DNA of 64,000 bases from Ylistrum balloti (taxonomy: Eukaryota). Shown here piece after piece: positions 1,335 to 64,000 of this stretch. Where the stretch lies: positions 620,001-684,000 of the forward strand of contig NW_026782443.1 of the NCBI RefSeq assembly GCF_031769215.1, in the 5' to 3' direction. Under the pieces are notes generated by a model. That model was not told the DNA's origin and did not search any database. It saw nothing but the letters and a program-made list of their open reading frames with translations. The position numbers were made by a program, and so were the translations under genes. The first letter of the stretch is position 1. Each line of letters opens with the position of its first letter.

Positions 1335-4300
1335 GTAAGTCTGCCTTTTTAATTGCAATATCAGTTGTGTTAAACAACGCAAACATGTATTTTTGTCAGG
1401 TTAGGAGAATAATGTGATTTGGGAGGACTAGTTTGTTTTGATACGCATTGTTTTTTAGACCATTTGTTTTCGAAAACAATGTAAGTTTGGTACCGTTTGA
1501 AAGCAATGTTTTTTCCGTAAATGTCAAAAGCGTTAGGAAGCAGATGGTGTTGTGCTGCTGGAAAGCTCAAATACGTTTAGTGATGTCAGTGACAGGTGTG
1601 TAAAAGTGGACATACTAGTCTTTGTATAATATTTGTAAAAGTGTTCATAGGCAAAAACATATTAACTAATAGATTTGATCTTGTTTATGATATAATGTGG
1701 TAATGAAATTTATTCAGCTTTACGATAGAAAGACAACAAAAACCAACATGTCATCGTAATCAAAATCCAAGCCAAAGTCAATAAAACTATGGTAAAGCAT
1801 GAAAAAAGGAAAGATTTACGCGGAGACTTCTAAAAAGTACAAGGAGAATTAAACCAGGGCCCGTATTCATGAAACCATTCTCATGCTCAAGCATAGATTT
1901 TGTGCTCAAGTAAACTTTTTTATAATTCACCCAAATCGTATTAAATAACTTTAACTTAAACAAGACATAAAGCTTGAGCACAAAATTCATGCTTGAGCAT
2001 AAGAATGGTGTCATGAATACGGGCCCAGGTGTTCCGGAAAAGTAAGCGTCTTCTGCTTCATCGACGACACCCGCCATGTTAAACCTGGTCAATACAAGCA
2101 AGTATTGTCACGTTCTTAAATGAGATCAAGGTATAGAACCAACACGTAAACTTATATATTTTACATATGTTTCAGTGACTTCACACGATTCCAAAGTTCA
2201 GAGTATGGAAACTGCTTTACGTTGGAGTCCTCTAACTATTTCTCTAGAATACCGGGTCCTCTAAATGGTAAATTAATTACTATGTGTCGTTTGTTTGAAC
2301 AACGAAAATTCGAATTGTTTTTATTGAAAAACAAATATAACACAACATCCCGAAATAAGAAGGTAATGAAAACAGTTATGCACTGAGATTATTCTTAGTA
2401 TTTCGCTATTAATGCAAACAAGAGTTCCCGAACGACTTAAATAAACAAATCAGGAAATAGTCATCAAGATCCCCTGCCCACATGCATTCGTAAAACATAT
2501 ACATTTAAAATGAGCGTCATGGAAAACTGGACAAATATCAGTCAATTACGTCACAGCAGCATCATTAAAAATGCGCGGAATTCGCCGTTAATCACACCTG
2601 AACAAGTGAATAAGGTAACAAGTGTACCAATCGAGTTTCCTCAAAATCCTACCAGTCTTTCATAAGATATCATGCGGAAAGCAGCATGCGAGAGTGATTA
2701 GAGAAACCTGCAAATCAGGTCACAGCAGCCTCATAAATTCTGCGCGAAAGTCGCTGTTAATCAAACTTGGGTAAGAGAGTGTATTAACCAAGTTTCATCC
2801 TATCAGTCCTTCAAAAGCAGCATCCGGACTGACGGAAGAATGGACGGACGGAACCCATTTTGATATACCCCGCCAACTTCGTCGGGCGGGGGATAATTAG
2901 GGCTTTATTAATTTGATCAAATCTTTTCTGAAGTATGCTTTTCAACATAAATACTCCTGTACATTTGTTATTAAAGTAATATTTTCAAAAAAACTAATGT
3001 TATTGATCTTTTCGCCTTTCGATGTCTTTATAAACAACAACAGAGTACATGGTAAACGCTTCCTGTGCAATAAATGATTATTTATTTCTTGCCTATTCAT
3101 CTATTTATCTGCATTGCTCTATTTACATATCAATAGCAGATATATGTATATTGATGTATTTTCAATCATTATTCTAAAAGGATTGTGGCTGACGCTGAAT
3201 CTAGAAATCCTGGAATATATTACCAACTTCGTCACTGGATATGGTATAAAGTTGTTAATTCATCAGCCAGGCACAGTAGTATTCCCTACAGTTGAGGGTA
3301 TTGTCCTCAGTCCGGGATATGAGACAAACATCGCCTTGAAGATGGTAAGTACGGATGACAAGTTGTGTATATTCAATATCGTTGTATGTTTTCCCTGTTT
3401 ATTCAATTATTTTGGTTAGCAATAATTATTTTACAAATATACCTACTGGCCAATACCGCCGTAATGATAGTATATTTTGATGAATCCGATCGACGATGAT
3501 CCATCAACCTTTCTAACTCAATGTCTAAAATAAATAGGCAGAATAGACTGCTTTTCGGAAACAATTACATACTCGATTCAGAAAGTAGGATTTCTTTTGT
3601 TTTTTGAAATGTGTGTATTAAACAACATCAACGAACGCGTATTCGATATATAGATTTGTCACATGACATACAGAATGTTGGTCTTCAAGGGAAATCCTTA
3701 AATGAGTAGAAAAAACTACACACTAATAATAGCGAAATTTGTTTTCATAAGATACATAAATAACTAAAAATCATCAATCAGTCTTTCTTATATATCTATT
3801 TTACATTAATATTTGCGTGAATACCGATATTAAATGAGACATTCATATAAACTTAGCCACTGAGAATTTACCTCTGATGGAAGGTATTTTACACTAAAGT
3901 CTAGCGACAAAATAAGGTTTGTCACTGCAAAATCAGTGATTTTCGCGGATGATTTATTTTCGTTATTTTCTTGGGTACTCCACACATTAGTATGTTTAAG
4001 AATCAATAGACTGTTCGAATAATTTAAAACATCTTTAAGATACTTTCTACCTATGAAATCAAGTGTCGACGAAATAGAATTCTTTAAAAACCCACGAGAT
4101 TTATGCCCCACGAATACCTATTTTAAAGCAGATCCTTGATACAAGTGTGTTTAATCTAGGTGACCGTAAACCGACTAGGACAGCCCCACGGAGATTGTAC
4201 AGAAGGGCAAGATTTCAAAAAGGCTTTCGGTATCCAGTACACCATTCCAGTAAGTAACCATGTCGTTGTGCAGGTATCGCTATTCACAGGGGCTTCAGAA

Positions 4301-7300
4301 ATGATGGATCGATCTGTTTATATCTAACATATCTCTGTATATGCAGTATACCTGTGAATACAGCTTTTCGTTATCCTAATCACGCTTAGTAATGGTTAGA
4401 TTTCAATATGACCACCGATTAGCAGCTTTCTAAAGATTAAAATTTTGATGTAGTGGTTTATTTTAGCATAAAGCTGTATTATTATAGCGAAGTAACTTTG
4501 AATCCAACATGCTCGTTAATTTGCTTGTTGGATCTTGTTACCCCTCTATGTTGCACTATCCTTATGTTATGTTATCCTTATGCACTAAGAAAATATTCCT
4601 CTTTGAATTTTTCCATGACATCCTCTACTGAGTCCACAAATCTAGTAAGATATTGTTCAATTCTTGCCATAAGTCCTCTGTATGTTTCCTTAGGTTCCCT
4701 TTGGGCTGTCTGTAATAGCTTGAAATATTGGTAGGGCCTTTTCCCGTACCTGTCCATTAGGGCTTTACAAAGTTCTTCAAATGACCCATGTGCTTGAATA
4801 GCTACCTCTCTGGCCTCACCTGTTAACAAGGTTCTCAGCTGTAGCATTTTTACTTCTTCTGTCCATCCAGCCTGTGTTGATAAAGCAGTAAACTCTGATA
4901 AGAATGTCACTATATCCTCACTTTCAGTATGAATATAAGGTTGAAGTTACAGTCTAAACGGCACAGGGTTAGAATTTGTCTCACTCCGTTCCTTTTGAAG
5001 TTTTGCTTTTTCAATCTCTAGTTCCAATTCTTTCACTTTCCTTTGATGTTCTCTTTCCTTTTCTTCGGCGTCCATTCTTATCTTTTCTCTTTCCACTTCC
5101 ATCGTCATCCTTTCTCTTTCGAAATTCATTTGGCGTTCTTTTTCCTCTTTCTCTGCTTGAAGTTTCTCTTTTTCTAAGTTCATTTGGCGTTCTTTTTCCT
5201 CTTTCTCTGCTTGAATTTCGAGTCTTCTTATTTCCAACTTTGTTTGTGCTGCCGTCATCTTCGCAGTTTCCGTTTCTTCAGGCGTTGACATATTGAACAG
5301 TTCTAATGAGCGTTATATCTTTGATAACGGAGTCCTTCTCCTTAGAATGATCCTTTACCGCTGCCACCAGAATATGTTAGCCCTCTATGTTGTACTATCC
5401 TTATGTTATACAAAAGACCAGCAACACCCGTTCTCAAGTACGAATGTTGAGTATTAACACAGGTTACAACAATGATAACATGTATGGCCTGAGTATCGAG
5501 CTTAACAAGTTACTCCTTCCACGGCCACACCAGGACTGACTCTATTTGCTGTGATCTTACAGTTTATCCTAAAGTAATTATAATCTAATTCTGATAGGGA
5601 AAGTGTCTTCTACTGATCTACAATTAAACCGTGAACAGTTAATGCCTCAATGGTGGAGAGCATGTCCAGCCAATGTTTCACGGCATGATTCTGACACTAA
5701 GGTGACCGCAATTAAACTATCTGTCTGATAAGCCAGCCGGTCACATTAAGATTTAACACAAATTATGTTCTACACTTGAGTGACAAATTTCACTATTAAC
5801 AGATCTATTTCTTATTTGAGAACGTGCCATTACTCACTTGGATCGATCAATGCTTTAGTACTTTGTCAGGAATCTGTATAAATTTTTCTGTTGCCAATAC
5901 TTTACCTTAGTTTTATGGAATTTGAATTTGGATTGGGATTATTGTGACATGTTGATATCTTACACCAAATAGATTGGGAAAAAGCATTTCGTACACTGGT
6001 GGGTTTCCTATTGAACGGAAATAGTCGTTTACTCTTCAATTGACTAAGATTATTATTATTATTTTAATCAACATTTTTATTCAGTATGAATAGTTATATC
6101 AATAAAGCGTATTAAAAACCTTTCATTGTCTTATGCTGTTGGTTATCGTGTTATTAATCAAATACGATATTCTGCTTGTAGGCGTGCATCAAGTTGTGTA
6201 AATATCATTGGGTAGTGAAAATGTGTGACTGTATTCCCGGACAGATTGAAGACTACACCTACAACTATTACTCCTACGACTATGGTATTCGCAAGTGTAG
6301 AACTAATAGTCCAGATGGTATGTATATCATATTCTTTTCATAAGGAAAATTTACATTTTCCGATTTTCCTTTATGAAACTTTTTTATCTTTAGTTTTTCA
6401 TAACTAATGAATACTCTGAAAGTATTCATATTTTACATTAAATCTAGGTTCATGATTCTTATAATTCTACATTTTTTATTATATCTTATGATTATTAATT
6501 GCTGTAGTTTTCTGTTTTATTATAAATATTAAGCCCTAGCTGAAATCCCGTGTAAAGACGGAAATGTTCACCGTTAATCTTCACTGAAGTGTTTTTTTGT
6601 ATTTGACCAACCTAAGTCTATATTCGCAAGTGTAGAACTAATAGTCCAGATGGTATGTATATCATATTCTTTTCATAAGGAAAATTTACATTTTCCGATT
6701 TTCCTTTATGAAACTTTTTTATCTTTAGTTTTTCATAACTAATGAATACTCTGAAAGTATTCATATTTTACATTAAATCTAGGTTCATGATTCTTATAAT
6801 TCTACATTTTTTATTATATCTTATGATTATTAATTGCTGTAGTTTTCTGTTTTATTATAAATATTAAGCCCTAGCTGAGAAATCCCGTGTTTTGAGTTAA
6901 AGACGGAAATGTCTCACCGTTAATCTTCACTGAAGTGTTTTTTTTGTATTTGACCAACCTAAGTCTATATTTCATTGTTCAAATTTACTTTTTGACTGGT
7001 CATCCTGTCTTAAAAGCAGTATATCTATAAATAACTGAGTAACATATCTATAAATAACTAAATAACATAAGTTACATAAATAAGTAACATATTCACAAAC
7101 GGCCCAGGCCACTTTTATCATTTCGGCCAGTCTTGACGCCCACTAAAACCTATTGTAATAGGATACTGAAAAGATGAGCAGATTCAATTAGTCAAGGCTA
7201 CCAATAAGCGTGATGTAACCGAGCATTACGGCTGCTTTGAGCAACTAATTTTTGTTACGAACCCGCACGTACATGTGAGCAATCTGAGCATGCGCCATGG

Positions 7301-10300
7301 ACTGGTCAGCCAATCGGGATCTCACCTTTCACGGACAGTTCCTTGAATTACTTGTATTTTCCCCTCTTATGTTCACTTATACTTGGGACGAAATAAAGTA
7401 AGATCAACTTAACAAGGTGTCTCCTTGCTGTTTCACAGGTCCTCATCTATCATTGAATCAGACAACAGCAAATACAACATAACAAACAAAACCATTACAC
7501 ACTCGGTGAAATTCAAACAATGCACACAAGTTTACCCTATTTTTATGACCGAGAAGAACAGATTGAGGGTTTAGCTGAAAAAGTAAAAACTAAATTTGCA
7601 TTACTATGTATTATACATTGTATTACTGTGTAATATATATTATGTTATATTCCATTTGGTAAACATATCATACTCATGTAATAGACTGATACTCAACAAT
7701 TACGTCAGGCTTAACTGATCCATAAAGATATGAATAAATTGATAAAAGATTACCGTGGCATCAACCCCTGAAAATTCATCATTTATAGTACCAGTAAAGC
7801 ATTCTTCTGTATTGCATTACTACCAGTATCAGTAAAATATTCTTCTATATGTATTCTTGAAAATTTCAAAAAGTATTAATTAACTTGTTTACGTTAATAC
7901 TTGTGCATTATATGATATAATAGTTTTCGTTTGGCTCAAAGGACTATCAAACGTAAAACACATAGTGGTGCTATAGCATCAAACAGCTTGGAATTTATCA
8001 CTGAAGTGACTTAGATTTGTAGGTTGTTCAATGTTCTGATAATAGTGCCTCAATTTTTTTTACTCTCTCTACAGACAAGCTGTGCCAGATAAAGGTAGAA
8101 GCTTTGTATATAAAAAAGTCTCTGGATTGTTCATGTGGTAGCCCGTGTAAGTAAGTAGACATCAACAAACTTTGCCTTGTGAATTTTTAGTTTCTGGATA
8201 GTAACATTCCTGTATCCCCAACCAATGACTTTAACATGTCGTAGTTGATTCGATATTCAAATCCCATTATCTTGATTTCTCGCCATACCTGTGGTATGCA
8301 GGTATTCTTTGAATTGTTGGAATATCGGTAATTTCTTTATTGTCTCTATAAGTGCGTATGAAATAAACCAATTATTTCATTTCTTTATTACAACAAAATG
8401 TTATTTTCATAAGGATAAGTTTCAGTATAGATATCAATTGTTACAAAACCTCAAAACAATTGTCAAACTACGACCTAAAGAGTACTCGAAAGTCTTTAAT
8501 TTTCGTGTGGTATTTATTTTCATCGAATGCGTGGATACTCTTAAGGCATGAATCCACATTTTCACCAACTACTAAAATAAGTATAAGATTGATTGGGCTA
8601 TATTTATCAACTTAATCAAATGTCCACGAAGTAGGATTTTTGCATGAAAATTGAGACCCATTTAAATGCATAAGTTTGCAGTATATCATGTAAGAATTCT
8701 TACATTCCTTAGAAATTACCATGTTTCATAACTCAAAATATTTTCACGACATTTCATCGAAGAGAGGTGAAGTACGAAAAGACGATATCGGGACGGCCAT
8801 GGCCAAATGATGTTTATCTTGTAAGTTGTAATTTTAAGATCTTGGTTCGGTTAATTCTTCAAGTTTAAAGAAGGAAATATACAACAGAGTGTAATAAAGG
8901 AAATTAATTCGACCGAACAAAACAATGCGAACAAGAAAATTAAATAACTCATATATGATTCTTTCAAACCTAGCCAGCTTATTTTCTGTAACTTAAATGT
9001 ATAAAGAAATATTTTGAAATTGAATCTAAATTAATGTACGTGTACAGTTCAGTAATTTCTAGTATAAATATGCCTGCTGATGTTCATGCTTTAGAGGGAA
9101 GTCGTGAAAAGTTGTAGAAAACATATATTAGAAAGTATGAATTATAAATTTGTTCACTGTTTGTGACATGTTATAGAAATATGCTCTGGTAAAAGAAATG
9201 TGTGCAGATAAAAACAAGACCAACACGAAGGAATTTTGTGCTCGTTATCTCAACAACAGCAAAATTGTCAACATTACCGAGTAAGTACTGTTACAGCGAA
9301 AGAGGCAAAATAACATTTATATTGAATTGTAGTGTTCAAACTACAAACATACATGTTGGATCTTAAACGATTTTTCATTTCATATGATATTTTTGAAATG
9401 AGACATAGAATTGTTTGTAAGCATTAGTTTTAATCATTGTCCGGCTCAAATGTATTCAACTCTTAGCCTATATTAAAAGGTGTTTTTCACTCATGTGTCT
9501 TTTGTACAATCTTTCATAGAATCTATGAAAAGGAAAGATATTGAAGATGGAGTNNNNNNNNNNNNNNNNNNNNNNNNNNNNNNNNNNNNNNNNNNNNNNN
9601 NNNNNNNNNNNNNNNNNNNNNNNNNNNNNNNNNNNNNNNNNNNNNNNNNNNNNNNNNNNNNNNNNNNNNNNNNNNNNNNNNNNNNNNNNNNNNNNNNNNN
9701 NNNNNNNTCTCTCTCTGTTACTGCGTTATTTGTTTTATAATTTTAGGAAATATGTAGCTCTTTTTTGCTTGACTCATCTTTGATACTTGCTTAATGAATC
9801 CATATTTAATATTATCTATATGAATCTATTATCCACTATTTAAGTCATGCTCAAATTTCATTTACAGAAACTGTTTTCCTGGATCATTTCTACATAATTC
9901 CGTATCATTGTCATTATTATCACATATCAATATATAACATATATTTATTGTTTTGCATATATATGTTTAGTAAAGAATCATCGATCCAACTAAATAGTTG
10001 ATCGAGGATATTTTTCATTATATTATAATGAAGTTCCGTTTTTAGAGCCCGAAGCAACTTCTTAAGGGCAGTGATTTATTATGAAGATATCAACTACGAA
10101 GTTATCACAGAAAGTCCTTTGTATGATGTAAGTATGTTATGACACAAAGTCCTTTGTATGATGTAAGTATGTTATCACAGAAAGTCCTTTGTATGATGTA
10201 AGTATGTTATCACAGAAAGTCCTTTGTATGATATAAGTATATTATCACAGAAAGTCCTTTGTATGATGTAAGTATGTTATCACAGAAAGTCCTTTGTATG

Positions 10301-12299: not shown

Positions 12300-13095
12300 C
12301 TGAGATACAGCATTTCTATAAATTTTGTCGTTTGAGATACTGTAATTCTATAAATGATGTTATTTAAGATACAGTATTTCTATAAATGATGTTATTAAAG
12401 AGACGGTATTTCTATAGATGATGTTGTTTGATATTAATAGAATCTTTCCCTACCTTGAGGGTGTGACGGAGAGGGGTTGGAGATTTCTCTGTTACACCCT
12501 CAAGGTAGGGAATGATTATTTTTCTTCCATCATACTTTTTCTCAGAGAGCCTTAGCTTCGGTGATAATCAGCTTGTAAACAAACAGGTAAAAAATACTGT
12601 TCATGCTTTGCTGCACTAACTATTTCGCCAGTGTCAGTCATGTGGACTTTATACATCATATAAGTTCCTTTAAGGCGAAAAGTGTCAATAATCTTGCCCT
12701 TCCTATCTTCATATCCTATGCTGACAGTGTCTCCTATTTCAAACATGGTTTTGAGCTATTGGTAAATTCGTACATGTGTACTTGTTTATATACATGTAGC
12801 AGACAACTTGTGTAGAAGTAGTTGCGGTTCACTTCCGGTGCACGCGCTATCTGTCATACCCTGGAGGTTGACAGAGCAATTATACCCTAGGGGATGACAG
12901 AGAAATCTTGAACAAGTAAAATTGGTTACAAGCCTGTGGATGGTGGGAGAAATTGTATTTCCATAAATGATATTGTTTGAGATACTGTTTTTCTATACAT
13001 GATGTTGTTTCAAATACAATATCTCCATAAAAGATGTTTAACATACATTTCTGTAAATGATGTTTGAGATACTGTTTTTCTATACATGATGTTGG
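12300..13095. repeat. Degenerate ~31-bp tandem repeat split by an insertion
   Basis: GAGATACTGT(A/T)TTTCTATA(A/C)ATGATGTT units at ~12300-12430 and ~12955-13095. Confidence 0.75.
12431..12950 (-). mobile_element. Non-autonomous element with subterminal hairpins (Crypton-like candidate)
   Basis: 22-bp stem at 12446-12512, second hairpin at 12850-12901, shared inverted ACAGAGAAATCT motif, ETS site and 64-aa ORF inside. Confidence 0.5.
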
Positions 13096-13099
13096 TTGA

Positions 13100-14355
13100 G
13101 ACTGATCCTTTGATCTGGTCCCTGATTCTTCTCTGTGTCTGGTTTGTATGTTATTCAGCGTCCATCTGCTGACTGATCCTTTGATCTGGTCCCTGATTCT
13201 TCTCTATGTCTTGTTTGTATGTTATTCAGCGTCCATCTGCCGACTGATCCTTTGATCTGGTCCCTGATTCTTCTCTGTATATAGTTTGTATGTTATTCAG
13301 CGTCCATCTGCTGACTGATCCATTGATCTGGTCCCTGATTCTTCTCTATGTCTGGTTTGTATGTTATTCAGCGTCCATCTGCCGACTGATCCTTTGATCT
13401 GGTCCCTGATTCTTCTCTGTGTCTGGTTTGTATGTTATTCAGCGTCCATCTGCTGACTGATCCATTGATCTGGTCCCTGATTCTTCTCTATGTCTTGTTT
13501 GTATGTTATTCAGCGTCCATCTGCCGACTGATCCATTGATCTGGTCCCTGATTTTTCTCTGTGTCTGGTTTGTATATTATTCAGCGTCCATCTGCTGACT
13601 GATCCATTGATCTGGTCCCTGATTCTTCTCTATGTCTTGTTTGTATGTTATTCAGCGTCCATCTGCCGACTGATCCTTTGATATGGTCCCTGATTCTTCT
13701 CTATGTCTGGTTTGTATGATAATCAGCGTCCATCTGCCGACTGATCCATTGATCTGGTCCCTGATTCTTCTCTATGTCTTGTTTGTATGTTATTCAGCGT
13801 CCATCTGCCGACTGATCCTTTGATCTGGCCCCTGATTCTTCTCTGTGTCTGGTTTGTATGATATTCGGCGTCCATCTGCCGACTGATCCTTTGATCTGGT
13901 CCCTGATTCTTCTCTGTATATAGTTTGTATGTTATTCAGCGTCCATCTGCCGACTGATCCATTGATCTGGTCCCTGATTCTTCTCTGTATATAGTTTGTA
14001 TGTTATTCAGCGTCCATCTGCCGACTGATCCATTGATCTGGTCCCTGATTCTTCTGTGTGTCTAGTTAGTATGTTATTCAGCGTCCATCTGCCGACTGAT
14101 CCATTGATCTGGTCCCTGATTCTTCTGTGTGTCTAGTTAGTATGTTATTCAGCGTCCATCTGCTGCCTGATTCATTGATCTGGCCCCTGATTCTTCTCTG
14201 TGTCTGGTTTGTATTTTAATCGGCGTCCATCTGCCGACTGATCCTTTGATCTGGTCCCTGATTCTTCTCTGAATCAAGTTTGTATTTTAATCGGCGTCCA
14301 TCTGCCGAGTGATCCTCTGGTTTGTATGTTACTAAGCATCTATCTGCCGACTGAT
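13100..14355. repeat. 71-bp tandem repeat, ~17 copies
   Basis: Unit GACTGATCC(T/A)TTGATCTGGTCCCTGATTCTTCTC...CAGCGTCCATCTGC. Confidence 0.97.
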
Positions 14356-14519
14356 ACTGGGAGCTCCTGGTTGAGTTATTCTAAACGCCTAGAAAAATGG
14401 CAAACATCGACTACACTTGCCATTTAAATCTTGCCACCAAGTAATGTCGAATTTTCAAACGAGAATGAACCAACAAGCAATCTTGTGAGCATCAGACATT
14501 TCCAGTTCCAAATCACACA

Positions 14520-14985: not shown

Positions 14986-14986
14986 C

Positions 14987-16722
14987 GACATCAATGAACT
15001 GTCATTAATCAACAGTCGACATAATTTAGATTTGAAAGTACTATGTCATTAATCAACAGGACATCAATGAACTGTCATTAAGACAACATCAAGTGTATAT
15101 TAAAAGTTGATTAAGACCCCCGACATCAATGAACTGTCATTTATCAAAAGACCCCCGACATCAGTGAACTGTCATTAATCAACAGACCTTTGACATTAAT
15201 GAACTGACATTAATCAACAGACCCCGACATCAATGAACTGTCATTAATCAACAGACCCCTGACATCAATGGACTGTCATTTATCAACAACAGACCCCCGA
15301 CATCAATGGACTGTCATTAATCAACAGACCCCCGACATCAACGAACTGTCATTAATCAACACACCCTTGACATCAATGAACTTTGTCATTAATCAACAGA
15401 CCCTCGACATCAATGAACTTTGTCATTAATCAACAGACCCCCGACATCAGTGAACTGTCATTAATCAACAGACCCTTGACATCAATGAACTGTCATTAAT
15501 CAACACACCCTTGACATCAATGAACTGTCATTAATCAACACACCCTTGACATCAATGAACTGTCATTAATCAACAGACCCTTGACATCAATGAACTGTCA
15601 TTAATCAACAGACCCCCGACATCAATGAACTGTCATTAATCAACAGACCCTCGACATCAATGAACTGTCATTAATCAACAGACCCCCGACATCAATGAAC
15701 TGACATTAATCAACAGACCCTTGACATCAATGAACTGTCATTAATCAACAGACCCCCGACATCAATGAACTATGTCATTAATCAACAGACCCCCGACATC
15801 AATGAACTGACATTAATCAACAGACCCCCGACATCAATGAACTATGTCATTAATCAACAGACCCTCGACATCAATGAACTGACATTAATCAACAGACCCC
15901 CGACATCAATGAACTATGTCATTAATCAACAGACCCCCGACATCAATGAACTATGTCATTAATCAACAGACCCCCGACATCAATGAACTGTCATTTATCA
16001 ACAGACCCCCGACATCAGTGAACTGTCATTAATCAACAGACCCTTGACATCAATGAACTGTCATTAATCAACAGACCCCCGACATCAGTGAACTGTCATT
16101 AATAAACAGACCCCCGACATCAATGAACTGTCATTAATCAACAGCCCCTCGACATCAATGGACTGTCATTTATCAACAACAGACCCCCGACATCAATGGA
16201 CTGTCATTTATCAACAACAGACCCTTGACATCAATGGACTGTCATTAATCAACAGACCCCCGACATCAACGAACTGTCATTAATCAACACACCCTTGACA
16301 TCAATGAACTGTCATTAATCAACAGACCCCCGACATCAATGGACTGTCATTAATCAACAGACCCTTGACATCAATGAACTGTCATTAATCAACAGACCCC
16401 CGACATCAATGAACTGTCATTAATCAACACACCCTTGACATCAATGAACTGTCATTAATCAACACACCCTTGACATCAATGAACTGTCATTAATCAACAC
16501 ACCCTTGACATCAATGAACTGTCATTAATCAACACACCCTTGACATCAATGAACTGTCATTAATCAACACACCCTTGACATCAATGAACTGTCATTAATC
16601 AACACACCCTTGACATCAATGAACTGTCATTAATCAACACACCCTTGACATCAATGAACTGTCATTAATCAACAGACCCTTGACATCAATGAACTGTCAT
16701 TAATCAACACACCCTCGACATC
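14987..16722. repeat. 35-bp tandem repeat, ~48 copies
   Basis: Unit GACATCAATGAACTGTCATTAATCAACAGACCCCC. Confidence 0.97.
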
Positions 16723-16749
16723 ACTCTTTTCCAGCGACTATGTTTCCAT

Positions 16750-23750: not shown

Positions 23751-23754
23751 GATA

Positions 23755-48400: not shown

Positions 48401-50322
48401 GTTCGACAGAAAAACTTACAACAACAAAACGTTCGACCGAAAAACGTACAAAAACAAAACGTACAAAAACAAAACGTACAAAAACAAAATGTTTGACAGC
48501 AAAACATACAAAAACAAAATGTTCGACAGAAAAACATACAACAACAAAACGTTCGACAAAAAAACGTACAAAAACAAAATGTACAACAACAAAATGTTCG
48601 ACAGAAAAACGTACAACAACAAAACGTTCGACCGAAAAACGTACAAAAACAAAACGTACAAAAACCAAAAACAAAGCGTACAAAAACAAAACGTACAAAA
48701 ACAAAATGTTCGACAGAAAAACATACCACAACAAAACGTTCCACAGAAAAACATACAAAAACAAAACGTACAACAACAAAATGTACCACAATGAAATGTA
48801 TGACAGCAAAACATTCCACAGTACAAGAGGCCAAATGGGCCTGCAGCAATCACCTGGTATATATATCACCCAAATATCATGCCTCTAGGCCTTTTAGTTC
48901 ATGAGAAAAAGTTGTTTAAATATTTTAACAAATTTGACCACTGTGACCTGGAATATAAGTCAAGGTCATTTCTTTTCACAAACTATATCAAGCTTCATCT
49001 GAGGAAAATACCATCCAAATATCAAAATATTTTGTCCATTGGTTATTGAGAAGTTGTTTAAAGAAAAAAGTTGACGTTGGTTAACGGACAACGCACCATG
49101 ACAAAATATTTAAACTTACTTGGCCCTTTGGGCCGGATGAGCAAAAAATGGAGTTTCTTGTCACATGACAGCCATTGTTTATCTAGCTCTATTAGGACCT
49201 TATTTCACACATGGTAAACATTCCTGTAGAGATAATAGATTATTCGTCTATACGTCAGCTTTATAACTATCATATGGAAATAGTACTTCTATCATCATCA
49301 TCTTGAAACTCTCTCTACTTACCTGTTTTCTTAACTTCCTCCAATGCTGCGATAAGATCAGCTCTGATATCCGGGTTCTCATTGGCGATTTCCTGTCCCT
49401 TGGCTATGAAGTTTTCTGTAGCTCTCTGTACAGCAGCACTGAGGATGTGCGCTTTCTTGGATCGTCCCTTCTTTTTATTGGATGGGCTTTTTTGATTCAC
49501 CAATGTTGTCACCTGTAAAATGACCAGTTGGTATTTCGTCTTTATGTTGCATTTTTTGGGGTCAGTCATGATCAATATGAGCAAAACAACAAGCAATCAT
49601 CCTTCACTCATAATTCTAACCAAGTTGGAAATATTTCCAATAGAAATTCAACAAATAATGCTCAAAAATCTAGTTTTCCTACATAAACTATAGTAAACTT
49701 TAACCCCTCCGCATGGGGAAATGTGAGACCCTTGGACCATGAAATTCACAAGTTTGGTAAAGCACCTTAAGATGCTCTTATTCATGAAGGGTGTTTGATT
49801 ATACCATATCTGGGTCTTGAGACTAAGATTTTTGAAATCTGAGTCAATTTTATCTGTTTTGGCCCCACTCCACAGGGGCTTGAGGGACAGGGCCAAAATG
49901 GATCAAATTGACACAGATTTCAAAAATCTTAATCTCAAGACCCAGATATGGTAGAATCAAATACTCTTCATGTATAATTCGCAATTTTGGTTCATCCTAG
50001 GCAAGAGAAGGTTTCTGCAAACTTTTATTGAAATTGGATCAGGGGTTTTTGAGGAGAAGTGGAAAATATTCAATTGTTTGTGGATGCACAATGCTGGATA
50101 AAGGTGATTGCAATTGACTTTGGAAAAAAAAGGAAATTTCTATCATTAGCAAACTCAAATAATAATTAAACATTCAATTGTTATTCATGTGTGCACCAAT
50201 CTTACCTGTGTGACCAAGGGCTCCAGTGTTTTTTCTACTGATTTGGTACGAATCTCCAAATTTTTGGGATCCCATTTAATCTGTAGGGTCCCCAAACCAT
50301 TGGGGCTTAGGGTACTCATCAT
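30287..50322 (-). CDS. CTNNA: alpha-catenin, complete, 905 aa: complement(join(50206-50322,49323-49512,47871-48037,47495-47614,46452-46541,45268-45441,44901-45104,40755-40835,39993-40145,39520-39612,39129-39285,38552-38752,38127-38278,37340-37409,35871-36093,35188-35293,33146-33280,32044-32136,30983-31003,30287-30457))
   Basis: 20 GT-AG exons sum to 2718 nt in one frame; near-identity to alpha-catenin motifs (KWDPKNLEIRT, SLEERLESIISGAALMAD, KWDDSGNDII, LDSATSLIQAAKNLMNAV, WKMKAPEKKPLV). Confidence 0.97.
30983..31003 (-). CDS. CTNNA: alpha-catenin 21-nt microexon (YKMAGSK)
   Basis: cttttcag acceptor, AAG|gtgagt donor, phase 0-0; aligns with YQK.. after ASTK in vertebrate orthologues. Confidence 0.8.
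31213..31741. mobile_element. hAT-like MITE in an alpha-catenin intron
   Basis: 14-bp TIR CAGGG(C/T)TAGAAAAA at both ends; no recognisable 8-bp TSD. Confidence 0.6.
32044..32136 (-). CDS. CTNNA: alpha-catenin exon (LDSATSL...VASTK)
   Basis: tttcag / gtaaga. Confidence 0.96.
32285..32750. repeat. 74-bp tandem repeat, ~6 copies
   Basis: GCACCCGACT recurs every 74 bp. Confidence 0.95.
33038..33160 (-). repeat. ~26-bp repeat x5 made of the exon end plus donor
   Basis: Minus-strand unit CATTGTATCTGGG|GTAAGTCCGGTGT; first copy is the real exon end. Confidence 0.9.
33146..33280 (-). CDS. CTNNA: alpha-catenin exon (CPDSASKKDLL...GELIVSG)
   Basis: aatag / gtaagt. Confidence 0.96.
33838..34475. mobile_element. 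Helentron-type element; same family as 43007-43515
   Basis: AAGAGGCCCATGGGCC end; shared AAACATACCC(G)AAAAATAACAACACTTGGTCAAGACCATCTCAGG monomers. Confidence 0.7.
35188..35293 (-). CDS. CTNNA: alpha-catenin exon (GRGPLKST...SIADQ)
   Basis: ttacag / gtaggt. Confidence 0.96.
35480..35840. repeat. ~17-bp degenerate minisatellite
   Basis: AACTCAACATCTGCTGT units. Confidence 0.85.
35871..36093 (-). CDS. CTNNA: alpha-catenin exon (SYKTEQDD...MEMTDFT)
   Basis: ttgtag / gtaggt. Confidence 0.96.
36750..37020. mobile_element. Helentron-type element fragment
   Basis: ACAAGAGGCCCACTAGGCC end. Confidence 0.5.
37340..37409 (-). CDS. CTNNA: alpha-catenin exon (acidic linker NPEDIETDTE...SISR)
   Basis: ttgtag / gtgagt; phases fit. 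Confidence 0.92.
38127..38278 (-). CDS. CTNNA: alpha-catenin exon (VMPNFAEK...AVLMNR)
   Basis: catag / gtacgt. Confidence 0.96.
38552..38752 (-). CDS. CTNNA: alpha-catenin exon (ESHILEDVNKC...MLRDQ)
   Basis: ttacag / gtcagt. Confidence 0.96.
39129..39285 (-). CDS. CTNNA: alpha-catenin exon (VINAARIL...DDFLAVS)
   Basis: taaag / gtatgt. Confidence 0.96.
39520..39612 (-). CDS. CTNNA: alpha-catenin exon (VARLACS...SLCPQ)
   Basis: tctag / gtgaga. Confidence 0.96.
39993..40145 (-). CDS. CTNNA: alpha-catenin exon (LRKAVVDHVSDSF...NKLVE)
   Basis: caatag / gtatag. Confidence 0.96.
40377..40572. repeat. 36-bp tandem repeat, ~5 copies
   Basis: ATAACATACATCCTTAAGT core. Confidence 0.9.
40755..40835 (-). 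CDS. CTNNA: alpha-catenin exon (TGRSEPSE...DLRRQ)
   Basis: ttttag / gtaaga. Confidence 0.94.
43007..43515. mobile_element. Helentron-type element
   Basis: Homologous to 33838-34475; ends with GGTCATCATGACC hairpin and A-run. Confidence 0.7.
44735..44880. repeat. 21-bp tandem repeat, ~7 copies
   Basis: GAATTGGTATCTAGGG(C/T)GAGA units. Confidence 0.9.
44901..45104 (-). CDS. CTNNA: alpha-catenin exon (QKIIMDP...LSEYMNN)
   Basis: tttcag / gtgagt. Confidence 0.96.
45268..45441 (-). CDS. CTNNA: alpha-catenin exon (AYIRHPEL...GELAAALDELM)
   Basis: gatag / gtacga. Confidence 0.9.
45470..46335. mobile_element. Helentron-type element; same family as 49586-50120
   Basis: Shared CATCCTTCACTCATAATTCTAACCAAGT... 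body; terminal GGTCACC...GGTGACC hairpin. Confidence 0.65.
46452..46541 (-). CDS. CTNNA: alpha-catenin exon (DLKDPRRRDEIAAAR...TASK)
   Basis: tttgtag / gtaatg. Confidence 0.95.
47495..47614 (-). CDS. CTNNA: alpha-catenin exon (VEGDLDR...AQQRQN)
   Basis: tgtag / gtaagt. Confidence 0.95.
47871..48037 (-). CDS. CTNNA: alpha-catenin exon (EEMRDAS...MKSLRL)
   Basis: ttgcag / gtaagt. Confidence 0.96.
48318..48820. repeat. 15-bp compound minisatellite
   Basis: AAAACGTACAAAAAC / AAAATGTTCGACAGA / AAAACGTACAACAAC variants. Confidence 0.95.
48825..49145. mobile_element. Helentron-type element related to 24119-24930
   Basis: ACAAGAGGCC end; one TGACC...CAAGGTCATTTCTTTTC monomer; terminal GGCCCTTTGGGCC hairpin. 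Confidence 0.7.
49323..49512 (-). CDS. CTNNA: alpha-catenin exon (VTTLVNQK...EVKKT)
   Basis: ttacag / gtaagt. Confidence 0.96.
49586..50120. mobile_element. Partial Helentron-type copy containing an ~83-bp-arm hairpin
   Basis: Homologous to 45900-46300; inverted arms 49783-49865 and 49890-49972. Confidence 0.7.
50206..50322 (-). CDS. CTNNA: alpha-catenin coding exon 1 (MMSTLSP...LEPLVTQ); exon starts at 50339 with 5' UTR
   Basis: gacag acceptor, gtaag donor. Confidence 0.93.
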
Positions 50323-52722: not shown

Positions 52723-52896
52723 NNNNNNNNNNNNNNNNNNNNNNNNNNNNNNNNNNNNNNNNNNNNNNNNNNNNNNNNNNNNNNNNNNNNNNNNNNNNNN
52801 NNNNNNNNNNNNNNNNNNNNNNNNNNNNNNNNNNNNNNNNNNNNNNNNNNNNNNNNNNNNNNNNNNNNNNNNNNNNNNNNNNNNNNNNNNNNNNNN
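52723..52896. other. Assembly gap (174 N)
   Basis: N run. Confidence 1.
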
Positions 52897-55561: not shown

Positions 55562-57559
55562 CCTGTACTTGTATCAAACCACACAGATAATAATATCACT
55601 CAAATTAAACACACCTTACACTAAGCTGAAAAAGTACTAGATTAACTAACATATTTGTGACAAAAGTTAAATGATAGACCAAGCAATGAGAAATAGATGC
55701 TTCAAAGTGCAGATTGGAATATTACCTGTACAACAGTTCTGCACCAGACTATAACTCACTATCATCACAACTGGCCTATGTAAACATGTTGTCAGAGGCA
55801 GTCATTAGCATACACGGTGCTGTTCCGATTAAAATTCAATGCAACGGATAAAAGCAATCCATTGATAGGTGTTCTAGTTTTTTTTTTAAAAAAAAACCCA
55901 ACAAAGTAGCAGTATTTCCGCAAAGCAAGTAAAAGGAAAAACAAAGCTGAAACATTCTTGAAAATTAATAGCAAGAAGTTGAACAGATACGGAAACCGAA
56001 TTTGATTATCGGGTATGGGATTTTGGTAAGTTGGTTTTTTTTTTTCTGTTTCCAAGGGTATGACCATTTTGTAAGTGAGTTTATCTGTTTCCAAGGGTAT
56101 GGACATTTGGTAAGTGAGTTTATCTGTTTACAAGTGTATGGACATTTGGTAAGTGAGTTTATCTGTTTCCAAAAGCAATAACATTTGGTAATTGAGTTTA
56201 TCTGTTTCCATGGGTATGAACATTTTGTCGTTTTTACCAAATTGTGACATTACATGAAGTTCTATAGTAAGTATGTGACTACAATATCATGGTCTCTTTC
56301 CCCTCCCCCTCCTCCTCCTCTCCTTCCTTCCCTCTTCCTGCCTACACCCCATCTCCCCCTCCTCATTCCCCTTGCCTTCAACCTCCTTTTCCTTACCCGC
56401 TCCTCCTCCCCACCCTCCTCCTCCCCCACCTCCTCGTCACCAGCGGTTATTTAATATCAGTTGATAAATTGGATCCAGTAAATATCACCAGACAATCTAA
56501 TCAAGCAGAATTTCATCATTTGTCTTAAATACGATTATTATAGAAATAAACGAAGCCATGTGATATCATTCCTTCAATCAAAATGAAAAATATGTTTGTT
56601 TTGTTTTATATTCTTCTTCATGCCCTAATAAATATGTTTTGATTTGAAATGTATTGGTCACCTTGCGGTAATGAGATGGTATCTGTTTAAATAGTGTTTT
56701 TCTAATTGACCCATTAAATCTTTTTATGCATGCTTTAACACAAAGTTTGGGCACCTGCCAGTTATATACACAAACATATTACGATAACATCATATCTGTT
56801 ATCGGGGTTAAGTATTAATCTAAATTTAATATAAATGACTAATTATAGTATCATTAAATTGTAAATATTTCATCGGCCATTCATAGATTTTTACAAAAAT
56901 ACTGACTGCTATATCTGTTGATATAAGATACCAGAACTGAAATACAGACAATTGGAATTCGTTAAAGAATGACGAAAACTATTATATAAATATATAACCA
57001 TGCACGTGAGATGTAGGGGCCTCACTCGTAGAATGGGGATGTCACAATAGTTTTTTTGGGGTAGTGCTTTGGATGGAAATAACGACTGCATTATCATACA
57101 TCTTGATTCAGGATAATGACAGGTACATGGTTCATCGTGCCTAAACAACACGTGTGTAATTATTGTACAATACACTACACTTGGGGTTAGTAAACCTGAT
57201 ACTCTATGTCAGGTTTTTGTAATAACTGACACGAAGAATTAATTACAACATTCCATTTAGTTCGGTCACTTGATTCAGAACTGATATTTCCAGTAATGTT
57301 TTCAGCTTTTTGTGTTTTGCATTATATTCTGGAATGTTTTTGCCGATTTTTTCACGCTGATTAAGTGTTGTTGTTCATTAAATGTTTTGACTGAAATCTG
57401 TCCTGAATATCACTGTTATGAACATACGCTTCGATATCTATTCAGACGGTGCAACTGTTATCTGAAATGTTCAACACATTCAGACAACAAAGAAAATAAG
57501 GTTACATAATCTTAATTCGACTTGTATCCCATGGAACTTGGTCCAACTATGACCAGAAG

Positions 57560-57670
57560 AAAGATTTACACCGAGATGTCTAAAAAGTGACAGGATGCAA
57601 GTGTCTTCTTATTCATCGACGACACCCGCCATGTAAACCTTGGTCAATCCACGTAAGTAATGTTACGCTA
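57560..57670 (-). mobile_element. Penelope-associated 3' repeat, copy B (partial)
   Basis: TTCATCGACGACACCCGCCATGTAAACCTTGGTCAAT core. Confidence 0.65.
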
Positions 57671-57714
57671 CCAAATCAGATCAACAACAAAACCACCAGG
57701 CAAACTGACGAACA

Positions 57715-59540
57715 TCCAACCCTTCCATTCTATCACTAACCTAACCTACACCAAACCCGTCCATTCTATCACTAACCTAACCAACACCAAACCCGTCCAT
57801 CCTATCACTAACCTAACCTACACCAAACCCGTCCATTCTATCACTAACCTAACTAACACCAAACCCGTCCATTCTATCACAACCTAACCAAACTCACCCA
57901 TTCTATCACTAACCTAACCAACACCAAACCCGTCCATCCTATCACTAACCTAACCAACACAAAACCCGTCCATTCTATCACTAACCTAACCTACACCAAA
58001 CCCGTCCATTCTATCACTGACCTAACTAACACCAAACCCGTCCATTCTATCACTGACCTAACTAACACCAAACCCGTCCATTCTATCACTGACCTAACTA
58101 ACACCAAACCCGTCCATTCTATCACTGACCTAACTAACACCAAACCCGTCCATTCTATCACTAACCTAACCAACACCAAACCCATCCATTTTATCACTAA
58201 CCTAACTACCACCAAACCCGTCCATCCTATCACTGACCTAACTAACACCAAACCCGTCCATTCTATCACTGACCTAACTAACACCAAACCCGTCCATTCT
58301 ATCACTAACCTAACCAACACCAAACCCGTCCATTCTATCACTAACCTAACCAACACCAAACCCGTCCATCCTATCACTAAACTAACCAACACCAAACCCG
58401 TCCATTCTATCACTAACCTAACCAACACAAAACCCGTCCATTCTATCACTAACCTAACCAACACCAAACCCGTCCATTATATCACTAACCTAACCAACAC
58501 AAAACCCGTCCATTCTATCACTAACCTAACCAACATCAAACCCGTCCATCCTATCACTAACCTAACCAACACCAAACCCGTCCATTCTATCACTAACCTA
58601 ACTAACACCAAACCCGTCCATTCTATCACTAACCTAACCAACACCAAACCCGTCCATCCTATCACTAAACTAACCAACACCAAACCCGTCCATCCTATCA
58701 CTGACCTAACTAACACCAAACCCGTCCATTCTATCACTGACCTAACTAACACCAAACCCGTCCATTCTATCACTAACCTAACCAACACAAAACCCGTCCA
58801 TTCTATCACTAACCTAACCAACACCAAACCCGTCCATCCTATCACTAAACTAACCAACACCAAACCCGTCCATTCTATCACTAACCTAACCTACACCAAA
58901 CCCGTCCATTCTATCACTAACACAACCAACACCAAACCCATCCATTATATCACTAACCTAACCAACACCAAACCCGTCCATCCTATCACTAACCTAACCA
59001 ACATCAAACCCGTCCATCCTATCACTAACCTAACCAACACCAAACCCGTCCATTCTATCACTAACCTAACTAACACCAAACCCGTCCATTCTATCACTAA
59101 CCTAACCAACACCAAACCCGTCCATCCTATCACTAAACTAACCAACACCAAACCCGTCCATTCTATCACTAACCTAACCAACACAAAACCCGTCCATTCT
59201 ATCACTAACCTAACCAACACCAAACCCGTCCATTCTATCACTAACCTAACCAACACCAAACCCGTCCATCCTATCACTAACCTAACCAACACCAAACCCG
59301 TCCATCCTATCACTGACCTAACCAACACCAAACCCGACCATTATATCACTAACCTAACCAACATCAAACCCGTCCACTCTATCACTAACCTAACCAACAC
59401 CAAACCCGTCCATTATATCACTAACCTAACCAACACCAAACCCATCCATTTTATCACTAACCTAACTACCACCAAACCCGTCCATCCTATCACTGACCTA
59501 ACCAACACCAAACCCGACCATTATATCACTAAACTGACCA
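57715..59540. repeat. 36-bp tandem repeat, ~50 copies
   Basis: Unit CATTCTATCACTAACCTAACCAACACCAAACCCGTC. Confidence 0.97.
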
Positions 59541-59779
59541 ACAGCGCGTGGGTTACAGGGTTTTGTATTATGGAAATATTCGAATATTCCGATGTACACA
59601 AATAAAAAAAACCCCAAAATGTTATCAGTATTAGGTGAACAAATACTGTCGTCATGTCATCCATTTTCGAGGTTATATCAAACATGTCTATATAGACTAA
59701 TGTGAATGATATCTATACTTAGTGTCCCAAGATCATACCATATATCGACTTGATGCAATTTACGCTAACTAATCAAAAA

Positions 59780-60408: not shown

Positions 60409-62419
60409 CAGTTCTGAATCAAGTGACCGAACTAAATGAATGTAGTAATTAATTCGTGTCAGTTATTACAAAAACCTGACATAGAGTATCAGGTTTACTA
60501 ACCCCAAGTGTAGTGGTTTGTACAATAATTACACACATGTGTTGTTTAGGCACGATAAACCATGTACCTGTCATTATCCTGAATCAAGGTGTATGATAAT
60601 GCAGTCGTTATTTCCATCCAAAGCACTACCCCAAAAAAGCTATTGTGACATCCCCATTCTACGAGTGAGACCCCTACATCTCACGTGCATGGTTATATAT
60701 TTATATAATAGTTTCCGTCATTCTTTAACGAATTCCATTTTTTTTTATAAAAATCTATGAATGGCCGATGAAATATTTCCAATTAATGATACTATATTTA
60801 GTCATTTATATTAAATTTAGATTAATACTTTACCCCGATAACAGATATGATGTTATCGTAATATGTTTGTGTATATAGCTGGCAGGTGCCCAAACTTTGT
60901 CTTAAAGTATGCATAACAGATTTAATGGGTCAATTAGAAAAACACTATTTAAACAGATACCATCTCATTACCGCAAGGTGACCAATACATTTCAAATCAA
61001 AACATATTTATCAGGGCATGTAGAAGAACATTAAATAAAACAAAAATATCTGTCATTTTGATTGAAGGAATGATATCACATGGCTTCGTTTATTTCTATA
61101 ATAATCGTATTTAAGACAAGTGATGAAACTCTGCTTGATTAGATTGTCTGGTGATATTTACTGGATTCAATCTGTATATATTATTAAATAACCGCTGGTG
61201 ACGAGAAGTGGTTGGGAGGAGGAAGGGGAGGAATGGGAGGAGGGAGAGGGGGAGGAGCGGGGAGGAGGAGGGTAGGGAGGAGAAGGAGGAGATGGGGAGA
61301 AGGAGGAGGAAGAGCAAGGGTATGAGGAGGAGGGGGAGATGGGGAGTGGGGAAGATAAGGGAAGGAAGGAGAGGAGGGGGAGGAGGGGGAAGAGACAATG
61401 ATATTGTGGTCACATACTTTCTATAGAACTTCATATAATGTCACAATTGAGTAAAACGACAAAATGTTCATACACTTGTAAACAGATAAACTCACTTACC
61501 AAATGGTCATACCCTTGTAAACAGATAAACTCACTTACCAATTGTCCATACGGTTGGAAACAAATAAACTCACTTACACACCAACTGCGACAATGAAATA
61601 TAAAGAAAATGAAAATTAAGCGGAAAGAAGACATTGAAACAGAAGTATAAATGATCTATGGGCTAACCCAGAAAAGTTTAGACAAACTGATTACCAGCAT
61701 TAAATAACATACGTATTGTTTACGATCATTTATTTGTTTGTTTACTTCATTTTCGTCTTTTATATCACTGAAAATCCACAAAGGCAAGTATTAGTACACA
61801 CGTACCTAAAACTATGAAGGAGATGTTTGTAAGCGGTTTAGTACTGGCGTTGTACCGATCTATTTTCTACAATTTGACACCCACTTGTTTAGGAGGTATA
61901 AGATTAGCATCCGTCTTTAACATAAAAACCGGATAAGGTTTTATTTACAATATCTACCGAAGTGGATAACTTGAACTGATAGTTATGTAGGCAAACCTGG
62001 ACTTAAGGAGGTTTCATTGTTGACAGGGAGTTTTATGTCGATGAACTGACATTTACAGTACCTCATCAAGTAACGTGATATGATATTAAAATAGTTGTAA
62101 TAAAGATACGTTTTGATTTACAATTTGATTCTCTTCACCTTTCAGGTAAATACAGTGTCACCCTGATAGATAGTTAATATAAAACACGACATTATTTTTC
62201 ATTGTCTTTAGGAAGAATCCAGTGTGAAATATGTTTCTTATCTTTGCGATTACAGAACTGACATTAAGAATTTTTTTTATAACAAAAAATATTGGAAACT
62301 TTATATTTAACATTTGCACGGTTATAAAACTTTATAAACTAACCGGAGAGAAGTATAATAACAAAAACATTTTTCAAAAAATACAAAAATGTCAACATAA
62401 TCATGCAAATTCAATAAAA

Positions 62420-62875
62420 TGAGCGCAAAATAAGAACAAAAAATTCACGTGGACTCCTACAAAAGCACAAGAAGATTAAGACCAGGTGTTCCGAAAAAGT
62501 AAGCGTCTTCTGATTCATCGACGACACCCGCCATGTAAACCTTGTTCAACATAAGTGATGTCACGTTCTCAAAATAGAAAAAAGGTATACAACAATGGGA
62601 CCAACAAGCAAACTAAGAGCACCAAACACGCCCAGCATCATATCATTCAAAGATCTAAAATATTTCTCAATGAGATCATCATGACGGCTGTAAAACTTCC
62701 CAATAATCTTCATCAACCTACGTCTTTTGAATATGTTGAAAATTGGTCGAAAGCTCATGCTATTAATGTCACTTCTAGAATAAACACGATAAGACTGTAA
62801 CAAAGATTTGACAGTGCTAAGAATGGTAGTTAGTCGTTGGTAGTTCGACGAAAATTAAATTTACAATTTTTTCAT
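62420..62875 (-). mobile_element. Penelope-like element 3' portion: RT C-terminus plus 3' repeat (copy C, empty MITE site)
   Basis: SYRVYS...RLMKIIGKFYSRHDDLIEKY resembles SYGVYIS...KFYxRHxDLIxKY; continues into the shared 3' core. Confidence 0.75.
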
Positions 62876-63286
62876 AACATTGACATTTCGTGTCAACTTG
62901 GGGCACCGGAAGTTGCCCTTGAAAAGAACACTGAGAGGTCGACAAAATAAGGAATATTGTTATTCAAAAGAAATACTTTTCATGACTGCACATCGAAGTG
63001 CATCGGCAAAAGGGTGTTCTCTGAAAAGAAAGAAACCAAACACAGCTTTGCAAGCAAACATGATATCGCGTGCTCTTCAATACTGAAACTGACAAGGAAA
63101 AGAAAATTTGATTAAGATAAAGTAATGTAAACTTCTTATTGACAGAAGGTTATCAAAGATAAACTAGTCGGATTTAAAACATATCAACATGTCAACAAAA
63201 AATCAAACCTAGATTCAACGAAACTAGAACAAAAAACGAAACAAATGAAAAACACACATGAAGCTTTTAAAGGAGAGTAAGACCCG

Positions 63287-63514
63287 GCCCCACATCTCAA
63301 CTTGAGATTTCCTCAAGCCCAGATTTTCCTCAGCTAATATCTCCTTGAAAATATCTTGTATGAAAATTCCTCAAGGAATTTCAGGACATCCTAGCCGATG
63401 ACTTCCTCCTGTTCCTTGAGAAAATTTTATACAAGCCGTTTTTGAGGAGATATCAGCAGAGGAAAATCTCGACTTGAGGAAATCTCAAGTTGAGATGTTT
63501 TATACAAGTGGGGC
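63287..63514. mobile_element. Harbinger-like MITE, 228 bp, inside Penelope-associated repeat copy D
   Basis: TIR GCCCCAC...CATCTCAACTTGAGATTTCCTCAAG (11-bp deletion in the left arm); CCG duplicated at 63284-63286 and 63515-63517. Confidence 0.82.
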
Positions 63515-64000
63515 CCGGTGTTCCTAAAGTCTAAACATTTCCTGTTTCGTCAACGACATCCGGCATGAAATTATGGGTCAATACAAGTAAGCAATGTCAT
63601 GTTTCATAAGGTTTACCGGACAATTTGAGGAGAATCGAACACAACTAACTTTAGAGTGCACAAGGAAATAGGATATTTACAATGTAAATAGATTATGGAG
63701 GGTTACACTTCCTCATTACTATCATTAACCGACATCTCTCTATACCTTGTGAGTTTAACGACAACAATCGTCTGTACCTTTCCTATATCGAGATGTAAAA
63801 CTTAACTTTAAAATATTGTGTCAAACTTTTGTTTCAATAAATGCAAGAGGTCACGTAAATATCCACCAACATCACATTGTCTCGGGTGTACGCCTTCGTG
63901 ACGTGTCAGGTGTACATTTCACGGTCTTGGATTATATCGATCACGGCATATATCAATTACGGAGTAGAATTGGTGGCCATTACATCCGGTCCATATCAAA

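Follow-up and report, generated by a model that had tools for sequence, protein, structure and literature searches.

Preference for an abundant palindromic target very probably explains why two unrelated Harbinger-type MITEs occupy one base of a Naiad-like retroelement tail in Ylistrum balloti

In a 64,000-nucleotide stretch of the genome of the bivalve Ylistrum balloti (assembly GCF_031769215.1, contig NW_026782443.1, positions 620,001 to 684,000; hereafter the window), two unrelated MITEs (miniature inverted-repeat transposable elements), MITE-A and MITE-D, are inserted at the same nucleotide of two copies of a dispersed repeat, and a third copy is empty at this point. The coincidence is real and mostly explained by a target preference of the type known from zebrafish: plain preference for a palindromic target, combined with an abundant retroelement tail that bears this motif, very probably accounts for the shared insertion base. 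In the proposed mechanism, two CWG-flanked families of the NuwaI/Harbinger3 type would have inserted independently, by cut-and-paste, into two old tail copies, and the same base would have been chosen because the transposase, presumably with a Myb-like partner protein, favours the extended palindrome A-n-A-C-CWG-G-T-n-T, of which the tail holds a perfect copy. Each new retroelement copy would bring a fresh target, the motif being part of a conserved stem-loop in the 3' untranslated region (3'UTR), and tail copies now supply about one third of the genome's perfect target sites. We infer both the transposase that moved the MITEs and the functional constraint on the 3'UTR element in active master copies. 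The young family D behaves as plain sequence preference predicts, but the older family A does so incompletely, with an eightfold bias left over.

All four copies of the repeat in the window lie on the minus strand, and the sequence on either side of the insertion point is homologous between copies. The 3'-most part of copy A (1734..1857), identified by blastn against positions 3-129 of the host consensus as tail of a Naiad-type Penelope-like element (PLE), closes with CAG at 1855-1857; it is followed by the 168-bp MITE-A (1858..2025, no strand assigned) and by the upstream part of the copy (2026..2139), which opens with the right-hand CAG (2026-2028) and whose 5' truncation falls at consensus position 240. 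Read on the plus strand, the locus is ...TTAAAC-CAG-[GGCCCG...CGGGCC]-CAG-GTGTTCC. Copy D is built in the same way: its 3'-most part (63178..63286) closes with a CCG flank at 63284-63286, MITE-D (227 bp, 63287..63513, no strand assigned) follows, and the upstream part (63514..63603) opens with CCG (63514-63516) and has its 5' truncation near consensus position 215, giving ...AAGAC-CCG-[GCCCCAC...GTGGGGC]-CCG-GTGTTCC. Copy C (488 bp, 62351..62838), which also contains the degenerate end of a reverse transcriptase (RT) open reading frame at about 62600-62854, holds the empty site, a single CAG at 62483-62485, and runs through it without interruption (...AAGAC-CAG-GTGTTCC). In copy B (~57550-57680), which adjoins a 36-bp satellite, the target-site segment is deleted.

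These readings bear out the core of a preliminary description of this DNA, namely two MITEs at one nucleotide with copy C as an empty control. Its size for MITE-A (168 bp) also stands, whereas the element in copy D measures 227 bp instead of the 228 bp counted in its own frame; the loci are separate, as it stated, and the 61 kb it placed between them depends on estimated gap lengths. The assembly gaps (9554-9707 and 52723-52896) are each more than 3 kb from any repeat copy, and copies B, C and D form a single gap-free block, so that only the distance from copy A to the others rests on gap estimates and no claim made here needs continuity across them. Four public short-read runs from two studies, one of which runs may be the assembly's own sample, yield contigs that span both MITE-D junctions and the empty site of copy C, which are therefore not assembly artefacts. 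The occupied form of the MITE-D site appeared in contigs of all four runs; as contigs lose rare variants, this does not imply absence of the empty allele in other individuals.

Both MITE families are short, non-coding and present in many copies (522 candidates for family A and 712 for family D at first look), with inverted repeats and a short flanking duplication. Family A has a full length of ~264 bp, of which the window copy is an internally deleted derivative with 53-bp terminal inverted repeats and tips GGCCCGTATTCATGA; its copies are 92-95% identical to the window copy used as query. Family D is 239 bp long at full length, and its copies are 98-100% identical to each other and to the window copy, again the query, which is a long foldback with arms of ~100 bp and lacks 9 bp near the left tip. 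Outside the tips the two MITEs have no significant similarity (best blastn match 16 nt, E=0.015), as the preliminary description had held in speaking of different bodies that share a GC-rich tip only. Both families carry CWG flanks and GC-rich tips, with GGCCCG (A) or GCCCCAC (D) following the CWG, and 320 intact family D elements are CWG-flanked on both sides. A single CAG stands at the empty paralogous site of copy C and of 30 other unoccupied copies; occupied copies have CWG on both sides, with rare flank variants that contain a central S (CCG, CGG). A 5-bp (CCWGG) duplication is ruled out, as T precedes CWG in 35-42% of insertions; sequence alone cannot separate a 1-bp from a 3-bp duplication. 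Both families are thus non-autonomous PIF/Harbinger elements of the CWG-flanked NuwaI/Harbinger3 group, a narrower placement than the Harbinger-type assignment made earlier.

The preference that probably led both families to one base is visible away from the repeat. Half-site profiles were drawn from the 40 best matches per family after removal of repeat-internal ones. The resulting 59 non-host insertions (118 half-sites) have A at -4 in 52% and at -2 in 67%, and C or T at -1 in 54% and 35%, respectively. In a second sample, 62 family A half-sites outside the repeat, taken in genome order and counted by hand, had A at -4 and -2 in 68% each and C or T at -1 in 53% and 42%, with G, A or C at -3 and T rare there. 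The extended palindromic target is A-n-A-C-CWG-G-T-n-T, outside the repeat as well as within it, and the plus-strand site of the repeat, AAGAC-CAG-GTGTT, is a perfect copy of this 11-bp motif. Seventeen of the 320 family D elements, or ~5% of family D copies, occupy perfect 11-mers; this exceeds the expectation for CWG sites about 44-fold, against a composition-based background of ~12 million such sites in the genome. A long palindromic CWG target is already known from zebrafish, where Harbinger3_DR integrates into AAACACCWGGTCTTT (PMC3016246, citing Sinzelle et al. 2008); on its sense strand, the site of the repeat, GGAACACCTGGTCTTAT, matches that sequence at 13 of 15 bases. A transposase that recognises the motif of another transposon, as first proposed, is therefore not needed, since insertions outside the repeat carry the same palindromic target.

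Two further observations concern target use. A different flank, ...CAGATGAGT(C/T) ahead of CWG, recurs at several family A ends (C27:744999, C249:1726072, C320:1480765/1483046), which suggests a second repeat family that was struck repeatedly. At locus L080 (G000:C19:26881-27125 and flanks), a nested double insertion places a family D element at the CTG that separates the retroelement tail from a family A element already in place; a MITE tip plus CWG therefore recreates a usable target.

The host repeat fits the 5'-truncated 3' end of a Naiad-type PLE. At least 3,795 candidate copies occur in the 648.5-Mb assembly, with lengths from 295 to 1,211 bp, one constant end and one variable end. This is the signature of 5' truncation in a retroelement, with the minus strand of the window as its sense strand. 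Longer copies contain, on the minus strand, a degenerate reading frame that closes with ...KFYGRHSDLIEKY... Pieces of this frame gave nothing meaningful in Pfam, and a word-index protein search with it returned unnamed fragments only; a profile search of a large protein library found ~29,000 relatives, full-length ones included. The Naiad type is marked by an N-terminal GIY-YIG endonuclease joined to a C-terminal reverse transcriptase; among the relatives, P0088, P0140 and P0208 have weak Pfam GIY-YIG matches of 18.7-22.7 bits (cut-off 22.6) and RVT_1 matches under the cut-off, scores that belong to database relatives of the host frame and not to full-length copies from this genome. A hammerhead or other known RNA was not matched in Rfam, either at the gathering threshold across the whole window or at E values up to 5 within 62350-62950. 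The protein relatives and the lack of an Rfam hammerhead therefore fit the Naiad clade of PLEs, and so lend support to the initial reading of the repeat as Penelope-associated. According to Craig et al. 2021 (PMC8557442), this clade dominates bivalve genomes, has no canonical hammerheads and occurs in fish too. The host repeat resembles it in heavy 5' truncation, absence of a canonical hammerhead (by Rfam) and thousands of copies in a bivalve; it differs in that it was seen in this genome only as truncated, degenerate 3' ends.

Comparison of 3'UTRs from five Naiad lineages, obtained through database relatives, places the target within a conserved element (62470..62545, minus strand, in copy C; L113:1846-1920, L116:1368-1442, L118:1076-1150, L120:1224-1298 and L121:838-912 elsewhere). 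Common to the five lineages are a block TGGCGGGTGTC, a short perfect palindrome and an invariant stretch GCTTACTCTTCCGGA(A/G)CACC(T/C)G. The palindrome varies between lineages, spans 8-10 nt and lies just upstream of a stem-loop (for example TCATCGATGA, CTACGTAG or CCTGCAGG), in which a 5-bp stem with covarying bases closes the invariant loop GCTTACTCTTCCGGARCACCYG. The five bases before the invariant stretch pair with the five after it in 30/30 cells, with compensatory changes in 5/5 pairs; the covariation score is 1.25, whereas shuffles score 0.44±0.12, and pairing in slid controls is 27-50%. This element matches no Rfam family and is not among the features described for the clade in the available parts of PMC8557442. 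In the lineage of the window the stem is AAGAC/GTCTT, and the MITE target AACAC-CTG-GTCTT covers the end of the loop and the 3' stem strand: AACACCTG, at the end of the invariant loop, forms the left half of the target, and the GTCTT stem strand forms the right half. The conservation and covariation of the element suggest that the motif is retained in active masters of the retroelement, and the lineage-specific stem sequences imply that more distant Naiads would lack the full palindrome. The possibility that Naiad tails deeply conserve the entire 11-mer was rejected, as only the left half is kept and more distant lineages have no CCWGG there.

Genome-wide counts show how far the repeat supplies such targets. 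Perfect sites of any kind (ANACCWGGTNT) number 15,042 versus 5,466 for the control; host-type sites (AGACCWGGTGT) number 4,758 versus 446, an excess of ~4,300, and represent 32% of all perfect sites (4,758/15,042). Family D follows this supply: 5/17 of its perfect-site insertions (29%) are in host-type sites against 32% available, an odds ratio of 0.9, and ~8% of its ends lie at the base of the repeat when all ends, those in diverged host copies included, are considered. Occupancy is low. Exact patterns retrieved ~20 occupied versus 4,758 empty host-type sites and at most ~200 AGAC-CWG junctions with such tips, that is, less than ~1% of the repeat's perfect sites genome-wide. Two occupied copies in one window are therefore rare locally, and about one such window is expected genome-wide, given roughly 100 or more occupied sites over ~10,000 windows.

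Several results weigh against motif preference as the whole explanation. Of the family A insertions in perfect sites, 15/19 (79%) are host-type (odds ratio 8.1, p=3e-5), and the repeat holds roughly 25-33% of all ends of this family. In a rough calculation, a model that treats the four bases flanking CWG on either side as independent positions falls about tenfold short of this family A share. The excess and the under-prediction together indicate that something beyond the 11-mer mattered for family A. Possible causes are a larger number of intact host sites at the time of its activity, wider or cooperative sequence recognition by the transposase, or a higher chance for insertions to persist within dead retroelement tails; among 30 empty host copies, only 10 have kept the perfect 11-mer. 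In addition, the flanks of copy D are CCG and not CWG, and no autonomous partner was linked to either MITE by terminal-repeat identity. The check for enrichment that had been suggested earlier hence has a split outcome, with no excess over other perfect sites in family D but a clear one in family A.

This excess is the main argument for a dedicated safe harbour, the interpretation given in the preliminary description, by which a transposase lineage has specialised on the PLE tail, beyond the short motif, as harmless and constantly renewed DNA. We consider such specialisation unlikely. It would accommodate the eightfold odds ratio of family A for host-type over other perfect 11-mers and the 25-33% of its ends within the repeat, and it gains some appeal from the left half of the target lying in a loop that five Naiad lineages keep invariant. 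The zebrafish target is moreover the same motif (PMC3016246), and fish have Naiads (PMC8557442). Against it, family D has no excess (5/17 versus 32% availability), most insertions of both families lie outside the repeat with the same half-site logo, the right half of the target is a lineage-specific strand of the covarying stem so that other Naiad lineages lack the full palindrome, and fewer than ~1% of host sites are occupied. The repeat is a recurrently targeted site, as originally claimed, with the shares of D and A ends given above, but a dedicated adaptation is not needed to explain this, although the family A excess leaves some room for one.

R1 and R2 in rDNA, Tx1L in Tx1D and Pokey in 28S likewise insert recurrently at one nucleotide of a multi-copy sequence, and they are essentially confined to their own target. 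Here, unlike in those systems, most insertions are elsewhere (~92% of D ends and ~67-75% of A ends lie outside the repeat, so neither family is obligately site-specific), and family D uses the repeat in proportion to its share of the motif. A broader variant of the safe-harbour idea is that the long NuwaI/Harbinger3 target mirrors the constrained Naiad 3'UTR stem-loop (loop ...GGAACACCYG, then the stem strand), such that the DNA transposon lineage might long have found in these tails, in animals at large, a harmless place to land that renews itself, and the zebrafish site AAACACCWGGTCTTT would be the same motif; we regard this as speculative and improbable.

Chance coincidence at a generic CWG/CCG trinucleotide, with no extended preference, is very improbable: a three-base flank is short and occurs often (composition gives ~12 million CWG sites), but the 44-fold enrichment of perfect 11-mers among family D insertions, the clear half-site logo and dozens of other insertions at the identical base of the repeat all speak against it. 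The two insertions in the window were rightly called independent events from the outset, given two MITE families, 5' truncation points that differ among occupied host copies and mixed MITE orientations relative to the host. Amplification of repeat and MITE as a unit, in which a master retroelement copy already carrying the MITE was retrotransposed, is the least probable reading and effectively excluded: it would yield several occupied copies at an identical base, but pairwise identity of the MITEs in occupied copies is 0.82-0.95 (A) and 0.98-0.99 (D) and that of the host flanks is 0.62-0.79, leaving the MITEs much less diverged than their surroundings, family A orientations are 9 versus 6, and two unrelated families plus the nested A-plus-D case at L080 share the site. 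The combination of palindromic-target preference and an abundant, motif-bearing tail therefore remains our preferred explanation.

Many insertions have flanking trinucleotides that do not match. The central base differs between the two sides (CAG versus CTG) in 12/50 family D insertions (24%) and 8/19 family A insertions (~42%); an earlier sample had differing canonical CWG pairs at 6/27 (D) and 7/15 (A, ~47%). Loci with differing CWG flanks include L062-L064, L070, L071 and L083. In family D, with copies 98-100% identical, this mismatch cannot be point mutation (p=2e-10). For PIF/Harbinger elements, excision by staggered cleavage within the flanking duplication has been proposed by Gilbert et al. 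2015 (PMC4561436). An excised element that keeps one strand of each donor flank and is ligated at a new site could carry over a mismatch wherever donor and target differ at W, and such strand carry-over would give exactly the observed pattern. Among ~330 family D copies, outer (11-12) and inner (7) flank variants were both at the ~1% level of point mutation, and therefore provide no information on whether outer bases travel with the element.

The target motif also recurs in minisatellites with 35-48-bp units, each unit containing it (AAGACCAGGT...). They were seen at L054:1297-1752 and L073:1281-2008 and, in the pattern lists, at C5:107388-107594, C18:857115-857297 and C213:184174-185760. The two examined, L054 and L073, match the tail region of the retroelement, and MITEs of both families lie inside two of the arrays. 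The window itself contains tandem arrays at 57700-59600, 13000-14400, 15100-16800, 27300-28100 and 48270-48850, with units of 36, 71, 35, 12 and 15 bp, the array of 36-bp units beginning immediately beside copy B of the retroelement tail.

The genome contains potential sources of a transposase. At least 150 DDE_Tnp_4 matches were found, many with open frames of 340-444 aa, among them intact transposase genes of 440-444 aa on C281, C332, C521 and C570, and at four loci Myb_DNA-bind_5 lies 0.6-2.2 kb from DDE_Tnp_4 in convergent arrangement (C955:80534-83376, C627:93674-96027, C991:10309-13060 and C101:2401906-2403083). These gene pairs have sizes like those of Harbinger3_DR (open frames of 349 aa and 214 aa), some with stop codons, and are candidate autonomous NuwaI elements. 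No transposase was found among open reading frames of at least 170 aa in the examined loci and the window.

The NuwaI group of PIF/Harbinger, as described by Han et al. 2015 (PMC4482050), is defined by CWG flanks and has terminal inverted repeats of 12-61 bp that usually start with GGG; HARBINGER3_DR is listed there as NuwaI-2_DRer, with a CWG target-site duplication and DDE_Tnp_4 and Myb_DNA-bind_5 proteins, and four NuwaI families are reported in an oyster, Crassostrea gigas. The elements described here share with Harbinger3_DR and NuwaI the CWG flanks, GC-rich terminal inverted repeats, non-autonomous derivatives and occurrence in bivalves (PMC4482050), and with Harbinger3_DR a long palindromic target, A-n-A-C-CWG-G-T-n-T here and AAACACCWGGTCTTT in zebrafish (PMC3016246). 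They differ from Harbinger3_DR in a preference that looks looser than the 15-bp consensus given in that source (PMC3016246), and in that the main reservoir of perfect sites is the tail of another transposon. Unlike the usual GGG of NuwaI in the same account (PMC4482050), the tips read GGC or GCC after the CWG and show GGG only when the G of CWG is counted in. Like mPing, a Tourist-like element mobilised by Ping/Pong (PMC4561436 and PMC2836001), both families are small and non-coding, with terminal inverted repeats, a GGCC-type tip and a palindromic 3-bp flank, and the staggered-cleavage model for mPing (PMC4561436) fits the non-matching central base seen here. Unlike them, mPing has TWA flanks, no long target consensus and a plant host (PMC4561436, PMC2836001).

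Two by-products are perhaps worth more than the original claim: a conserved, covarying 3'UTR stem-loop in Naiads, a clade reported without hammerhead ribozymes, and natural non-matching flanks that bear on Harbinger-type excision and insertion. The coincidence itself becomes an instance of sequence-directed integration that can be measured. That a NuwaI/Harbinger lineage of a bivalve shares the long target of zebrafish Harbinger3_DR suggests an ancient specificity, and such specificity is of interest in practice where transposon vectors are to be targeted. The targets open to a DNA transposon can be dominated by a single abundant retroelement, which biases where MITEs accumulate and can mimic safe-harbour behaviour.

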